Of a stretch of DNA of 64,000 nt, positions 13,729-51,587 are shown in pieces. Numbering within the stretch: position 1 is the stretch's first letter; each line of letters opens with the position of its first letter. The position numbers and the translations under genes were made by a program. The notes beneath the pieces are model-generated. The model was given only the letters and a program-made list of their open reading frames with translations. It had not been told where the DNA came from and searched no databases. The stretch is from Octopus sinensis (Eukaryota). The stretch spans positions 23,870,001 to 23,934,000 of the forward strand of contig NC_042999.1 in assembly GCF_006345805.1 (NCBI RefSeq), in the 5' to 3' direction.

Positions 13729-13757
13729 TCACCCTCCTACAGAATTTTTGGTCTTGG
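13729..13757 (-). CDS. Probable terminal coding exon of the VWD/PAN gene (AKTKNSVGG*)
   Basis: Acceptor gtttctacttttag|cc in phase 1, TGA at 13731-13729, AATAAA at 13724-13719; the paralog's candidate last exon also starts ag|cca. Short, so an alternative acceptor (e.g. near 13890) cannot be excluded. Confidence 0.5.
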
Positions 13758-15108
13758 CTAAAAGTAGAAACCATTTGTGGTTATAAGGGAATCAGATCGA
13801 TCAAGTGCTTGTAATATTGTGAATTCGAAAGTAATCGTTTGTGTTATAGCTTTACTGTATTTGTGAAGGAGGACACTTCATTAAATTCTTTTGATACAGA
13901 AGAACACCATATATATGAAGGGAAAAGACAAATAGTTGAATCAACCCGAAAATATCTGTAAGACGTCAGGTCTACCCGCCAGGGTTCTCTATGTATCTGT
14001 AACTGGAATGATCTTTTCTAAGGTACAAGACCGAGAAGATCGGGAAAGCTTTGTTTCTATGGAAGACAACCGATTGCATATCTTATAGGTCTTCCTTCTC
14101 TGCACCATGAACGTTTGTCCGAAAGTAAGACTAAGATTGATATATTTTGGTGCCAGCGTCATCGAGCATGAATTCAGAACGTAAAAAGATGGAAAAATTT
14201 CGCACGGTATTTTGACTAAAGATCTAATACGTGGTGAATATTCTTACGTGCTTTAGTCACGTTGCAGCCACACTGGTGTACAGCCTTCAAAGGTTTAATC
14301 GAACATAACGACCCTAATAGTTAATTGTTTTTTAAAGTCTTATACTTATAGGCACAGGAGTGGCTGTGTGCTAAGTGCCTTGTTTACCAACCACATGGTT
14401 CCGGGTTCAGTTCCACTGCGTGGCACCTTGGGCAAGTGTCTTCTACTATAGCCTCGGGCTGACCAAAGCCTTGTGAGTGGATTTGGTAGATGGAAACTGA
14501 AAGAAGCCCGTCGTATATATGTATATGTATATATGCATGTGTGTGTTTGTATGTCTGTGTTTGTCCCCTAGCATTGCTTGACGACCGATGCTGTTGTGTT
14601 TATTCCCCCGTAACTTAGCGGTTCGGCAAAAGAGACTGATGGAATAAGTACTGGGTTTACAAAGAATAAGTCCCGGGGTCGATTTGCTCGACTAAAGGCG
14701 GTGCTCCAGCATGGCTGCAGTCAAATGACTGAAACAAGTAAATGAGTAAAAGAGTAAAGAGTTATGCCATCAGTCTCTTATGCCGAATCGCTAAGTTACA
14801 AGGACGTAAACACAGCAACACCGATTGTCAAGCAGATTGGGGGACAAACACAGAATAAAGACATACCCGCACACACAACCACATCTCACAGACACACACA
14901 TACACACTCACGACGAACTGCCACACATTTTTCACACACCAAATTTACTCATGAAGCAATGATCAGTCTAGAGTGATTGTAGCAGACACACGGCCATGGT
15001 GCTGCGCAAAATCAAATGGTTACAAAGCAAGCTTCTTAACCTCACTGCCATTTATACGCATGCTCATTAACAAAATGTAAAGTTGTACAGGAAACACAAA
15101 ATACATAC

Positions 15109-15324
15109 CAGCAAAATAACTATCCTTGTTAGTAATGAACCGTAAGTATCTGTTGTAAGTCATCACCATTTTGCATACTTTCTTTGACTTAAGAAACGTT
15201 GCTCCGAAGCATCCTTTTTGCAAGCACATCTCTTGACAGTCTTCTTTATTCTTTACGTTAGTAATTGTCTGAAGATCATCGCAGTTTTCAATTGAAGCAC
15301 CATTTATTACGAAATTGCGTTTAC
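15109..15324 (-). CDS. VWD/PAN gene exon: PAN/apple domain 2 (SKRNFVINGASIENC...DCQEMCLQKGCFGATF...VCKMV...SYFA)
   Basis: Acceptor ttttcactgaaag|, donor |gtatgt; 216 bp, phase 1 to 1; same length as plus-strand exon 4178-4393, with shared INGASI and all five Cys aligned. Confidence 0.85.
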
Positions 15325-16689
15325 CTTTCAGTGAAAATCAAGAAATGTATAATGTTATGTGTATTCCTTTTAAATTCTTATCAACACATATAAGACATGT
15401 CAAGAAATACGTGTATACACACACACACACATACAAACACACACACACTCGCACACTCATACACATATACATACATATATATGCATATATATATTAATCT
15501 TTGTTTTTATGGTCAGTTATAAGCAATTTTACATTAATATGATCGGTTACTCTAAACGCTTGTAGAGTACGAATCTATTATTGTTATACAAGAATGTTGT
15601 TGATAGCGAATTCGAGTTTCGGACAGCTATATATATATAAATTTATGTAATAAACTGCTACTGTTATGGACATCACTATATAGGACAGACGAGTATGACA
15701 CTGGGACGGAGAACCACTCTATATAATGAGCAAATCCAATTCCCGCAATAAAAATAGATTCTTCTAAGTGAACACAGAGAGAGAGAGAGAGAGAGAGAGA
15801 AGAGAGAGAGAGAGAGAGAGAGAGAGAGAGAGATGTGCCGGTAACATCAAACAAAATTTCACAGTTTTCCCCTTCTACCCGTGCAAAGACACAATTTCGT
15901 TACAAGAACTTTTAAATAAAGAAAATCTATTCATCGAAAAATACAGAACACGTCTAAATATGTATGCATAACCATCTCTATACATATTTTCATTCGTGAC
16001 TACATACCCATCGCTGTACATATTCTCCCCCCCCCCGCTTACCGAAAGATAAACAATTATCTCCCCCGTCCACAATAATAATGATAACCAATTACTTCTC
16101 CTTAGAGTTTTCTACTTGTTGAATCATTCATTCATAAATTCCACACACAAGGACAAAATTTTTTTCTTTAGAAAATACGTACTTAAATAAATTTTTCTCT
16201 CCACTCGGTCTAAAAAATGTTTGCTGTAACTTGGTTGATAGAAGTTATTAGTATTAGTATTGTTATTAATTATATCAGTATTATTATTCTTATGATTTAT
16301 TATATTGGGATTGCTAGGAGGTTGCTGTTGGTGTCTGGGTAAACTGGTTGGAAATACGTGGTTCGGGTTTCTTCGTTGGAATAAATTGTTTGGGTGCTTA
16401 ATTATGTTTGGGATGTTGAGGACTTGGTTGTGTTGTCTGAGTAAATAGGTTGAGAGTCCGTAGGTTGAATTTCTTCGTTGAGGGATAGAGGAAGTCTCTT
16501 GGACGTTTCTAGTTGCTGGGGAGAAAAAAATCACTCCTAACCCTAGGGTTTGACCCAGTATTTCTTATTAGTGAAAGGTGTATGAAGCCTTGTCCAGGAG
16601 GAACTGATGTCATCAAACGGTATCTAGCATTCATCGGGTGTTTCGACCCTGAACCGTAACACCCTCCCATTGGTGGGTCAGTAGAAGTG

Positions 16690-48741: not shown

Positions 48742-50807
48742 CTAAAAATAAAACATAAAAGACAAGCTGTTATAATATAATAAAAAGTGACAAAAAAGCA
48801 TAGCATACGGAACCATGCAAGAATAACACATACAATAGACACTGATATACTGAATCTATAATCTGTTATCGACCAAACATCATTACAATTTCGACACCTT
48901 CCAATAATATTGTTCAGATTGGCAGTGTCAGCAAACATAAGATGCAGGAGTATAAATGAGGGGATATGATAGGCGAACACGAACAGAATATATATGTATA
49001 TATATATATTTATATGTATGTGTGTGTGTGTGTTTGTGTGTCTGTCTTTGTCCCCCTAGCATTGCTTGACAACCGATGCTGGTGTGTTTACGTCCCCGTC
49101 ACTTAGCGGTTCGGCAAAAGAGACGGATAGAATAAGTACTGGGCTTACAAAGAATAAGTCCCGGGGTCGATTTGCTCGACTAAAAAAAAGGCGGTGTTCC
49201 AGCATGGCCGCAGTCAAATGACTGAAACAAGTAAAAGAGTAAAAGCGTAAAAGAGAAGAAATAAGGCAGTAGCAACCACAGGAAAAGACGTGGTTTCTAG
49301 GCAGAGCATTAAAAACGCACGTGCTATGGGAATAGGGTGAAATATATAAAACGAAAGAAACAAATAAAGAAGGGTAGTAAAAAAAAAATAATAAACGATT
49401 TGGAGAGATGTACACATACATCAAATGTCTTTCGACTATGCAGTGGCATTGCCGAAATATATGCAAAAAAATGTCTTAATTCCAAAATGTGACGTTGCTT
49501 TTGTCTTGTACTACATTCCTACGATGGAGCTTTGTATTAATATTATTAGAAACCAGCTCCTTCCTCAGAGGAAGAGTCTAAATTATTAAAAACAGAAAGG
49601 AACATACATACATACATACATACATACATACATACATACATACATACATACATACATACATACATACATACATACATATATACATACCATACATACAATG
49701 CATATATATACATACATACATACATACATACATACATACATACATACATACATACATACATATATACATACATATATACATACCATACATACAATGCATA
49801 TATATACATACATACATACATACATACATACATACATACATACATGCATATATATACATACATAATACATACATACATATACATACATACATACATACAT
49901 ACATACCTACATACATACATACATACATGCATATATATACATAAATACATACATACTACATACATACATACATACATACAATATACATACCATACATACA
50001 ATGCATATATATACATAATACATACATACATACATACATACATACATACATACATACATATATACATACATATATATATATATATATATATATATAATAT
50101 ATATATATATAGATATATATATATATATATACACATACATACATGCGTAACAAACTGCCGAAACACCAATCTGGAGAAATTAGTCTTCTCACAACCAGAA
50201 TGGATATAGCTAATGCGAAGACTACAAATTCAAGCCATCAATGGAACTGTAAAAATTTGTAAAACTTTCCAGAAGCTCAGAATTTAGGTAGATATGCGCA
50301 TGCTTAGGCATGCAATTATATGCATGAGATTACATACGTAAAGTAAAACATACACATCTGCACATACACAGATTCCAAATACCTATTTCTTTACTACCCA
50401 CAAGGGGCTTAACACAGAGAGGACAAACAAGGACAGACAAACGGATTAAGTCGATTATACCGACCCCAGTGCGTAACTGGTACTTAATTTATCGACCCCG
50501 AAAGGATGAAAGGCAAAGTCGACCTCGGCGGAATTTGAACTTAGAACGTAACGGCAGGCGAAATACAGCTACGCATTTCGCCCGGCGTGCTAACGTTTCT
50601 GCCAGCTCACCGCCTATTCCAAATATCTTTCACATACACAGACACATGAAAAAATACGATCAGCTTTGGGAGATTACTCGGACGTAAACCAATCGACACT
50701 TGTTGCCAAGCGGTTGTAGGGATAGAAGCGAAAATACAATGACACATACATGTGGCAAAGAAGCTAATTTCTTACCAGACAGCCACAACTGCGCCCTGAA
50801 CATAATA

Positions 50808-51269
50808 GGATCTTTTCGGTTTGAACGGCAGTTTTTAACATAATTTCTAGGTAAGTAAAAAATTTTGATCTTCGTATACTGGTAGAATGTGTTTATAAAA
50901 CATCATTTTCTCTTGGCTTTCTTGAGAAAATTCTGTAGTTTGTAACATATTTCGTCTTTAATTTCTTGCATTTCGGCAATTTTATCCAATCACTGTCGTC
51001 TATTGAGTTAAAAAGCATTCTGTGCCGCATGAATATGTCCCTCGGTAAGAAACACATTGGGTTTATTTACATTTGTGAAGAAAAAAGATACCCTTCCCCC
51101 ACCCCTAACCCTAACCCTAACCCTAACCCTAACAAACTATAACTAACCCTAACTAACCCTAAATCTAAAACAAATTGAAATGCAATAGATCAATACTAGG
51201 GTCATAATTATGGGTGACAATTTCATATGACTCCGCTAGAAAAAACTGCCGTTGAAACCGAAAAGATCC
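50808..51269. mobile_element. TIR MITE with internal telomeric (CCCTAA)n array, copy 1
   Basis: TIRs GGATCTTTTCGGTTTGAACGGCAGTTTT / AAAACTGCCGTTGAAACCGAAAAGATCC; flanks acataata/atataata (7 of 8 match). Confidence 0.85.
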
Positions 51270-51321
51270 ATATAATATATGTAAATAATCAGAATCGATG
51301 AGAAGTATATAAAAATCTTAC

Positions 51322-51587
51322 CACATTTTGCTGTTTTTCTCCAATCGATAAATATGCCTGCATCTTCGCATTCGTCTGCCATTGACTCAAGTGTCTTGCA
51401 TAACACCGACTGAAGTTTAGGTTGCTTTAGATATGCGCAAACATCAAATTTACACGATTCCAAATGTCTATTGAGTTTCTCTTGTCCAATATTGTCTACG
51501 CAAGTTTTAAATAAGTTGCTACTTAGAATATTGCAACCCTTCACTTGTGTCGGGCTGCAATTATCTTCAGGTTGTTGACTCACGCAT
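51322..51587 (-). CDS. VWD/PAN gene, first visible exon: C8 domain (CVSQQPEDNC...CKFDVCAY...LCKTLESMADECEDAGIFIDWRKTAKC)
   Basis: Acceptor ctaattatcag| and donor |gtaag; 266 bp, phase 2 to 1; C8 cysteine pattern with W-R..C end; similar in size to the second C8 exon (269 bp). Confidence 0.85.

Follow-up and report, generated by a model that had tools for sequence, protein, structure and literature searches.

We analysed a 64,000-nucleotide window of the Octopus sinensis genome (RefSeq assembly GCF_006345805.1, contig NC_042999.1, positions 23,870,001 to 23,934,000; coordinates below count from its first base), whose low-GC, repeat-rich DNA carries a multi-exon gene for a cysteine-rich modular protein on the minus strand. 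Stop-free cysteine-rich segments follow one another on this strand from 51.6 to 15.1 kb, and a rough concatenation of them, compared with a protein collection, retrieved XP_029633305.1 (label P0001; UniProt A0A6P7S573), a "zonadhesin-like" O. sinensis protein of 1006 amino acids (aa), at 95% identity over 100% of the query. By spliced mapping, this protein aligned to the window with 100% identity across 14 exons, each bounded by AG and GT. RefSeq exons 2-13 form 12 core exons (51587..15109) with compatible phases and 983 open codons, and position 51587 is the exact acceptor of the first of them (RefSeq exon 2). A previous annotation made from the letters of this DNA (hereafter the sequence-only reading) had taken 51587 as its upper coordinate and had proposed a hidden gene of 13 exons and about 990 aa. 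The exact spliced mapping and the conserved junctions bear out one multi-exon gene, and the exon count and length also held, with about 993 aa, GT-AG junctions of compatible phase and 12 core exons that match XP_029633305.1 exactly. The gene is not hidden, being already available under these two accessions with predicted orthologs in two Octopus species, namely O. bimaculoides (XP_052822699.1, P0002, 1269 aa) and O. vulgaris (CAI9719091.1, P0003). Its public name, "zonadhesin-like", is a similarity-named prediction only.

Comparison with these two species revealed strong conservation of the exon structure. The core exons of O. bimaculoides have the same lengths and phases except for one 3-nt in-frame indel, those of O. 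vulgaris are ungapped with AG/GT intact (12/12), the splice sites of the core exons are conserved at 24 of 24 positions, and all 983 codons are open in the three species. When 373 random substitutions, the observed difference between O. sinensis and O. bimaculoides, were simulated, a mean of 16.5 stops arose and 0 of 3000 runs stayed open, which indicates that the reading frame has been maintained. Given these simulations, the Pfam cut-offs passed and the exon structure kept across species, chance can be excluded, and the locus holds a real, conserved, protein-coding gene of 13-plus exons that is already annotated in public databases. The core exons are listed below in the order of the transcript, with domains called at the Pfam curated (gathering) cut-offs; a D assembly is a succession of VWD, C8 and TIL.

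51322..51587, minus strand: C8 of the first D assembly (Pfam C8, 72 bits over two copies)
48551..48741, minus strand: TIL of the first D assembly (Pfam TIL, 29.6 bits)
46313..46496, minus strand: EGF-like (TILa-like) cysteine-rich module (weak Pfam EGF_MSP1_1, 21.4 bits)
40247..40810, minus strand: VWA without the metal-ion-dependent adhesion site (MIDAS) (Pfam VWA, 46 bits)
35614..35730, minus strand: canonical EGF (Pfam EGF, 27.7 bits)
32451..32695, minus strand: first half of the internal VWD, with YGEFYY in place of GDPH (Pfam VWD, 80 bits with the next exon)
29036..29334, minus strand: second half of the internal VWD, with the CGDCNG motif
26919..27187, minus strand: C8 of the second D assembly (Pfam and exact mapping)
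25265..25455, minus strand: TIL-like module of the second D assembly (homolog of exon 48551..48741)
23557..23734, minus strand: EGF-like module before the PAN pair (weak Pfam EGF_2; position filled in all family members)
20488..20718, minus strand: PAN/apple 1 (PAN_1, 19.2 bits, E=0.0011, just below the cut-off of 21.4 bits)
15109..15324, minus strand: PAN/apple 2 (PAN_1, 25.9 bits, above the cut-off; ends at a conserved GTATGT donor)

The domain content given in the sequence-only reading (VWD, C8, TIL, VWA, EGF) lies above the Pfam cut-offs, and the order it had proposed was corrected to D-EGF-VWA-EGF-D-EGF-PAN-PAN. With the first VWD taken from the orthologs, the full predicted order is VWD(GDPH)-C8-TIL-EGF-like-VWA-EGF-VWD-C8-TIL-EGF-like-PAN-PAN. 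The TILa assignment is matched by the segment of paralog P0006 equivalent to exon 46313..46496. VWD, C8 and TIL follow one another as in D-assembly proteins, on the evidence of Pfam, of a CGDC at residue 599 (the CGxCxG motif of D assemblies) and of Protein Data Bank (PDB) matches. The best solved relative is FCGBP (8rde, E=3.6e-149), followed by the D assemblies of VWF (D'D3), MUC5AC and MUC2; the FCGBP, VWF and MUC structure matches cover residues 456-849.

The tandem PAN/apple tail that had been proposed was recovered both by Pfam and by structure prediction. PAN1 falls short of the cut-off here, and its homolog in the neighbouring paralog scores 40 bits (Pfam PAN_1). An AlphaFold2 model of the PAN-PAN tail, built from a four-sequence alignment, had a mean predicted local distance difference test score (pLDDT) of 88.5, and a Foldseek search of the PDB matched it to the apple domains of factor XI and prekallikrein, to AMA1, and to the apple pairs of SML-2 and MIC4 with a probability of 1.00; the template modelling score against the apple structures is about 0.4 because the two domains are differently oriented. 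In PAN1, a conserved cysteine is replaced by phenylalanine only in O. sinensis (QCFHIF, compared with QCFHIC in O. vulgaris and HCSQLC in O. bimaculoides). This replacement would leave the disulfide partner unpaired, and may represent either a lineage-specific change or a base error. The VWA, whose best solved-structure match is VWF A1, has lost all MIDAS elements when aligned with its paralogs, with MEAS-A for DxSxS, the Thr replaced and FVG for TDG. The corresponding site reads VQAS-A in O. bimaculoides, and the paralogs keep DESGS...TDG.

We further searched for features that commonly end or anchor such proteins. No membrane segment was found (maximum 19-residue Kyte-Doolittle score, 1.29), nor any region rich in Pro/Thr/Ser (PTS; maximum 32% in any 50-residue window), and there was no Pfam match to CTCK, VWC or MAM in the window protein or the longer O. 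bimaculoides ortholog, the extreme N-terminus lying outside both. The sequence-only reading was thus right that a transmembrane segment and a cystine knot are missing. Its term "gel-former" is too strong for a protein without a mucin domain and a dimerising cystine knot, and for the same reason FCGBP is a better analogue than a mucin.

Two features shape the model at the 5' end:

55208..55307: assembly gap of exactly 100 N, in place of about 11.4 kb with the two N-terminal VWD exons
53663..53715, minus strand: RefSeq first coding exon MIMENLLFTNCDDPVQG (exact mapping; start reads 'MIMENLL..'; not a signal peptide)

The gap was assessed against the O. vulgaris locus (L001). Window positions 55207-49867 align to L001 12550-17779 and positions 56250-55308, across the gap, to L001 1-1119, and from these alignments on both sides it follows that the gap replaces about 11.4 kb. 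Both orthologs have an extra VWD before the first C8, with GDPH present in each; in O. vulgaris it is encoded by two exons at L001 10031-10285 and 11483-11787, and in O. sinensis the exon falls in the gap. Accordingly, tblastn at E up to 100 detected no N-terminal VWD exon in window 51.6-64 kb. The O. sinensis gene model is therefore truncated at its 5' end by the gap, and 51587, where the gene had been thought to start, is the point at which the model opens in the C8 of a first D assembly whose VWD exons were lost. The sequence identical to MIMENLLFTNCDDPVQG is intronic in O. vulgaris (L001 14035-14088, between the VWD-b and C8 exons). Since it is intronic there and is not a signal peptide, the RefSeq first exon is probably a patch by which the annotation made up for the gap. 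In the models of O. bimaculoides and O. vulgaris, VWD-b joins straight to the C8 exon in phase 2.

No match to the N-terminal modules of the paralogs (EGF, VWA, WSC) was detected in window 55.3-64 kb, L001 1-10 kb or L002 1-18 kb. A hydrophobicity-plus-donor scan for a signal-peptide exon returned candidates that were repeat-derived or unconvincing only. The stretch VVTLRSVLLAIILF, conserved in O. vulgaris and O. bimaculoides and considered in the paralog signal-peptide search, was rejected, as it has no start codon and carries an upstream stop. The O. vulgaris model CAI9719091.1 (L001 10001-48685) is itself faulty: it leaves out the exons of the first TIL, the first EGF-like module and the initial half of the internal VWD, reads the EGF exon out of frame (LIPATMKQIHARMEE...) and stops after the second C8, the 12/12 exons still being intact in the O. 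vulgaris DNA. Taken together, the orthologs permit a corrected 12-domain architecture despite the truncated O. sinensis model and its patched start.

The 3' end differs among the models of all three species, and two candidate terminal exons were located in the window:

13729..13757, minus strand: terminal coding exon of 29 nt, 'AKTKNSVGG*' (phase-compatible; AATAAA follows)
11217..11233, minus strand: alternative terminal mini-exon giving the RefSeq C-terminus '..GSFPV*' (mapper placement, not unique)

For the 29-nt exon, in which 13729 is the last base of the TGA, both O. vulgaris and O. bimaculoides preserve the polypyrimidine tract, AG, frame and TGA, together with an AATAAA that lies eight bases beyond the stop codon. 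No counterpart of the GSFPV* mini-exon was found within 10 kb downstream in O. bimaculoides, whose model reads through the conserved GTATGT donor after PAN2. The read-through C-terminus MYFVFPVQLYILLMSM... was considered as a membrane anchor and rejected, given that a 16-nt indel relative to O. bimaculoides breaks its frame and that the donor is conserved. As judged from this cross-species comparison, exon 13757-13729 is the best supported of the three 3'-end versions, in agreement with the 13th exon of the sequence-only reading.

To place the gene among its relatives, we ran a PAN-PAN profile with HMMER exhaustively against 1.84 billion representative proteins and obtained 144 matches at E≤0.001. 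Most of these were multi-PAN or PAN-plus-Sushi proteins, and the named matches that also contain a D assembly were all octopod:

CAI9719611.1 / A0AA36ANY5 (P0153), O. vulgaris: VWA-EGFx3-D-EGF-EGF-D-EGF-PAN-PAN
CAI9719088.1, O. vulgaris: D assembly and PAN-PAN
XP_052822696.1 and XP_014767465.1, O. bimaculoides: D assembly and PAN-PAN
GAB1606482.1, Argonauta hians: D assembly and PAN-PAN

P0153, P0012, P0155, P0005, P0059 and P0006 all end in D assembly-EGF-PAN-PAN, and in the profile search the C8-TIL-EGF-like-PAN-PAN tail lay at the C-termini of P0005, P0012, P0153 (through its cluster), P0155, P0059 and P0013. These comparisons assign the gene to an unnamed family of at least six predicted paralog lineages with a TIL-EGF-PAN-PAN tail, seen here only in named octopod proteins. 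The architecture, which had been described as unrecognised, is consequently shared within this family; the literature searches returned no characterised protein with D assemblies, VWA, EGF and a PAN pair, so that this part of the claim stands. A 1164-nt contig from SRR24189493 (L003) encodes an uninterrupted C8-TIL-EGF-PAN-PAN that shares only about 37% identity with the octopus paralogs. The contig resembles a transcript, in which case a homolog with these modules in this order is expressed; because the contig has no species attribution, the family may extend beyond the named octopods.

The end of one family member, XP_036356795.1 ('zonadhesin-like'), lies in the same window:

3060-3305, plus strand: first of its last two coding exons (PAN)
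4177-4395, plus strand: second of its last two coding exons (PAN)

This paralog stands tail to tail with the studied gene, an arrangement also found in O. bimaculoides, and some further family members belong to the same chromosomal cluster, as judged by accession numbering. The N-terminal part of XP_036356795.1 overlaps the C-terminal part of XP_036355134.1, a protein from an unplaced scaffold, and the neighbour gene has therefore probably been split by the assembly. The N-terminal half of the neighbour (A0A7E6EIP6, P0007) reads signal peptide-WSC-EGFs-VWA-VWD-C8-TIL, and clear signal peptides are present in the relatives P0007, P0004 and P0163.

Two members of the family are represented in the O. 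vulgaris skin-mucus proteome, according to the parts of its supplement that list them: A0AA36ANY5 (P0153), with about 42% coverage, 46 peptides and 124 peptide-spectrum matches (columns as interpreted), and A0A7E6EIP6 (P0007), for which peptides were also reported (PMC11431876). The family thus contributes real, apparently abundant proteins to octopus skin mucus. The main texts of the papers searched contain none of the accessions looked for, and the text of an Amphioctopus spermathecal/seminal proteome contains no relevant terms.

We next compared rates of evolution along the gene. The ratio of non-synonymous to synonymous rates (omega) was estimated between O. sinensis and O. bimaculoides with a pairwise maximum-likelihood codon model (F3x4, kappa estimated, multiple starts) and tested against omega=1. 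For the whole gene omega is about 1.0-1.1, because the gene is a mosaic of slow and fast parts. The six D-assembly exons together gave an omega of 0.54 (p=0.003), with values of 0.45 for the first C8, 0.18 for the first TIL (p=0.011) and 0.39 for the second half of the internal VWD (p=0.025); purifying selection acts on these exons. For the putative binding modules, omega was 3.0 for VWA (p=0.0011), 9.1 for PAN1 (p=0.003), 3.4 for PAN1 and PAN2 together (p=0.005) and 3.1 for VWA plus the PANs (p=2e-5), and VWA and PAN1 remain significant after Bonferroni correction for 12 exons.

The same pattern was seen when O. sinensis was compared with its sibling species O. vulgaris. In the VWA and PAN exons 36 of 1011 sites are different, against 6 of 1786 in their flanking introns (Fisher p=3e-11), and the exonic differences comprise 32.5 non-synonymous and 3.5 synonymous changes; for the VWA exon alone, there were 16 differences in 564 sites and 2 in 600 sites of its flanks. 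The EGF-b exon and both internal VWD exons do not differ at any of 661 sites. The rate of change in the VWA and PAN exons is thus about 10 times that of their own introns. Relaxed constraint alone is insufficient for this, and the simplest explanation is diversifying selection acting on the putative binding modules. Gene conversion from a paralog was considered for the clustered VWA and PAN differences and found unlikely, as the protein sequences of the paralog domains share only about 20-35% identity.

Comparison with characterised proteins places the gene closest to FCGBP. In both, VWD-C8-TIL assemblies are repeated, the PTS mucin domain and the cystine knot are missing, and GDPH occurs (here in the first VWD of the orthologs); FCGBP is a mucus protein, as are the paralogs here according to the part of the proteome supplement noted above. 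FCGBP, however, has 13 D assemblies rather than two and lacks the EGF modules, the inserted VWA and the C-terminal PAN pair of the octopus gene, whose internal VWD is without GDPH; the octopus gene is not an FCGBP ortholog. In VWF, as here, D assemblies flank a VWA region (D'D3-A-D4), and the octopus VWA is closest to VWF A1, which likewise has no MIDAS. The octopus protein lacks the D1-D2 propeptide, the VWC repeats and the terminal cystine knot of VWF, has one A domain instead of three, and adds a PAN pair.

Zonadhesin shares VWD-C8-TIL assemblies and an EGF module with the octopus protein, which lacks its MAM domains, mucin-like region, membrane segment and cytoplasmic tail. Zonadhesin evolves rapidly, and the octopus binding modules are likewise fast, as measured here. 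The gel-forming mucins MUC2, MUC5AC and MUC5B have the same D-assembly fold and CGDCNG motif, and in the supplement tables consulted the octopus paralogs occur, like them, in mucus, whereas the PTS domain, the D1-D2-D'D3 set, VWC and CTCK are all missing from the octopus protein. The apple fold of the tail is shared with factor XI and prekallikrein, Sarcocystis SML-2 and Toxoplasma MIC4, of which SML-2 and MIC4 are tandem-apple galactose lectins; these differ in their low identity (10-16%), in domain orientation and in that their PAN domains are not joined to D assemblies. Within the octopod family, including XP_036356795.1, the D assembly-EGF-PAN-PAN tail is common and VWA and EGF modules usually lie upstream, but the studied gene has its VWA between two D assemblies, has lost the MIDAS that the paralogs keep, and has few EGF repeats. 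By these defining features the gene is not a zonadhesin, a mucin or a VWF, its nearest solved relative being FCGBP, and what is new is the way in which familiar extracellular modules are combined, not the kind of molecule.

With moderate confidence, we propose that the product of the gene is a cysteine-rich protein, secreted to the extracellular space and akin to FCGBP and von Willebrand factor, in which a D-assembly scaffold carries fast-evolving ligand-binding modules. The signal peptides of the paralogs and the all-extracellular domain set suggest secretion, and by analogy with the family its location may be mucus. The two D assemblies would form a disulfide-bonded scaffold able to oligomerise or to attach covalently to a mucus or matrix network. 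In FCGBP and MUC2, GDPH is a site of autocatalytic cleavage and cross-linking, and the GDPH of the first VWD might allow covalent attachment as in FCGBP. The EGF modules may serve as spacers, and the MIDAS-less VWA and the C-terminal PAN/apple pair as the putative ligand-binding parts. Diversifying selection on these parts would mean that the molecules they bind turn over rapidly. Such molecules might be the surfaces of microbes or parasites in the barrier mucus, or reproductive partners that differ from species to species. The paralogs in skin mucus lead us to favour a role in mucus or at a barrier, and a reproductive role is kept as the main rival. We more tentatively suggest, as a possibility of distinctly lower probability, that the protein is a species-specific recognition molecule, acting in gamete/egg-envelope compatibility or in a host-microbe arms race in mucus, with both binding modules under strong diversifying selection, and that it could represent a fast-evolving 'mucus lectin on a polymer' known to date from octopods alone.

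Several observations weigh against this proposal. No signal-peptide exon was found within 10-18 kb upstream in O. vulgaris or O. bimaculoides, so that of the secreted scaffold envisaged in the sequence-only reading, secretion is suggested by relatives and the signal peptide of this gene itself was not recovered. Likewise, the expected presence in mucus proteomes applies to two paralogs, and the accessions of the studied gene are absent from the covered portions of the supplement text of two skin-mucus and one ink proteome papers. The protein collection searched contained no RNA-derived relative at >=90% identity. The loss of the MIDAS in VWA and of the PAN1 cysteine in O. sinensis could mean decay. 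Finally, the selection tests are pairwise, cover three closely related species and use an exon partition chosen after inspection.

The rival that survives best is a reproductive recognition protein of the sperm, spermatophore, oviducal gland or egg coat, in which VWA and PAN would mediate species-specific binding in a zonadhesin-like role. An omega above 1 in binding modules is typical of reproductive proteins, and the putative binding modules here have values well above 1 and differ sharply between the sibling species. The missing skin-mucus and ink detections, within the supplement text covered, also fit this explanation. In O. maya, transcripts named ZAN are up in the oviducal gland at the fertilisation stage and were assayed in the white body and testis (PMC8976471, PMC6522055), and these reproductive-tissue transcripts were counted in its favour. 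However, the O. maya 'zonadhesin' quantitative PCR primers have no match at the locus even with 3 mismatches, and because they match nowhere in the window those papers cannot be tied to the gene. The MAM domains, mucin region and membrane anchor that define zonadhesin are all lacking, and the closest paralogs with evidence are skin-mucus proteins in the supplement tables available. We therefore regard this explanation as rather unlikely, yet serious enough to keep beside the mucus proposal.

Decay of a duplicate is the next alternative, with constraint relaxed after duplication, a pseudogene in the making and the high ratios reflecting loss of function. It could account for a whole-gene omega near 1, for the lost MIDAS and PAN1 disulfide cysteine, and for the lack of a match both in the proteome supplement text, as far as its tables extend, and among the RNA-derived proteins searched. 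Against it, all 983/983 codons are open in three species where about 16 stops would be expected neutrally, the single indel is in frame, and the 24/24 splice sites are conserved. Moreover, omega is not uniformly 1, being significantly below it in the D-assembly exons and above it in VWA and PAN, and relaxation alone cannot make the latter evolve about 10 times faster than introns. Decay is accordingly improbable. An adhesive or cement secretion component (sucker, egg-stalk cement or temporary adhesive) is very unlikely: VWD-C8-TIL, EGF and lectin-like modules recall adhesive proteins of the Sfp1 type, with VWD and EGF, in echinoderms and flatworms, but the literature matches were generic only, no cephalopod adhesive dataset naming the gene or its paralogs was found in the literature searches, and fast evolution of binding modules is not expected for substrate adhesion.

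The useful results at this locus are the correction of the annotation and the selection signal. With a conserved scaffold and modules at an omega of about 3, the proposed FCGBP-like protein is a candidate for octopus barrier immunity or for reproductive isolation between O. sinensis and O. vulgaris.

The introns of the gene and its flanks also hold several repeat elements:

37654-39099, minus strand: LINE-type (long interspersed nuclear element) reverse transcriptase with an intact 482-codon frame (Pfam RVT_1, 105.7 bits), in the intron between VWA and EGF on the gene's own strand
21101-22007, plus strand: mariner/Mos1-like transposase remnant with several broken frames (HTH_48, 51.6 bits), in the intron between the EGF-like and PAN1 exons
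60919-60489, 49256-48988, 25180-24900, 14765-14341, 1294-840 and others: copies of a SINE-like (short interspersed nuclear element) repeat of 250-450 nt, 80-93% alike
30.4-32.1, 36.0-36.2, 44.2-44.9 kb and elsewhere: long AAT/ATT, AAG/CTT, GTT-type and TA/CA microsatellites in introns

The SINE-like copies give rise to recurrent pseudo-open reading frames, and one copy was wrongly treated as coding in an older O. bimaculoides model (P0160); the microsatellite tracts account for most of the long low-complexity 'open reading frames' in the six-frame list.

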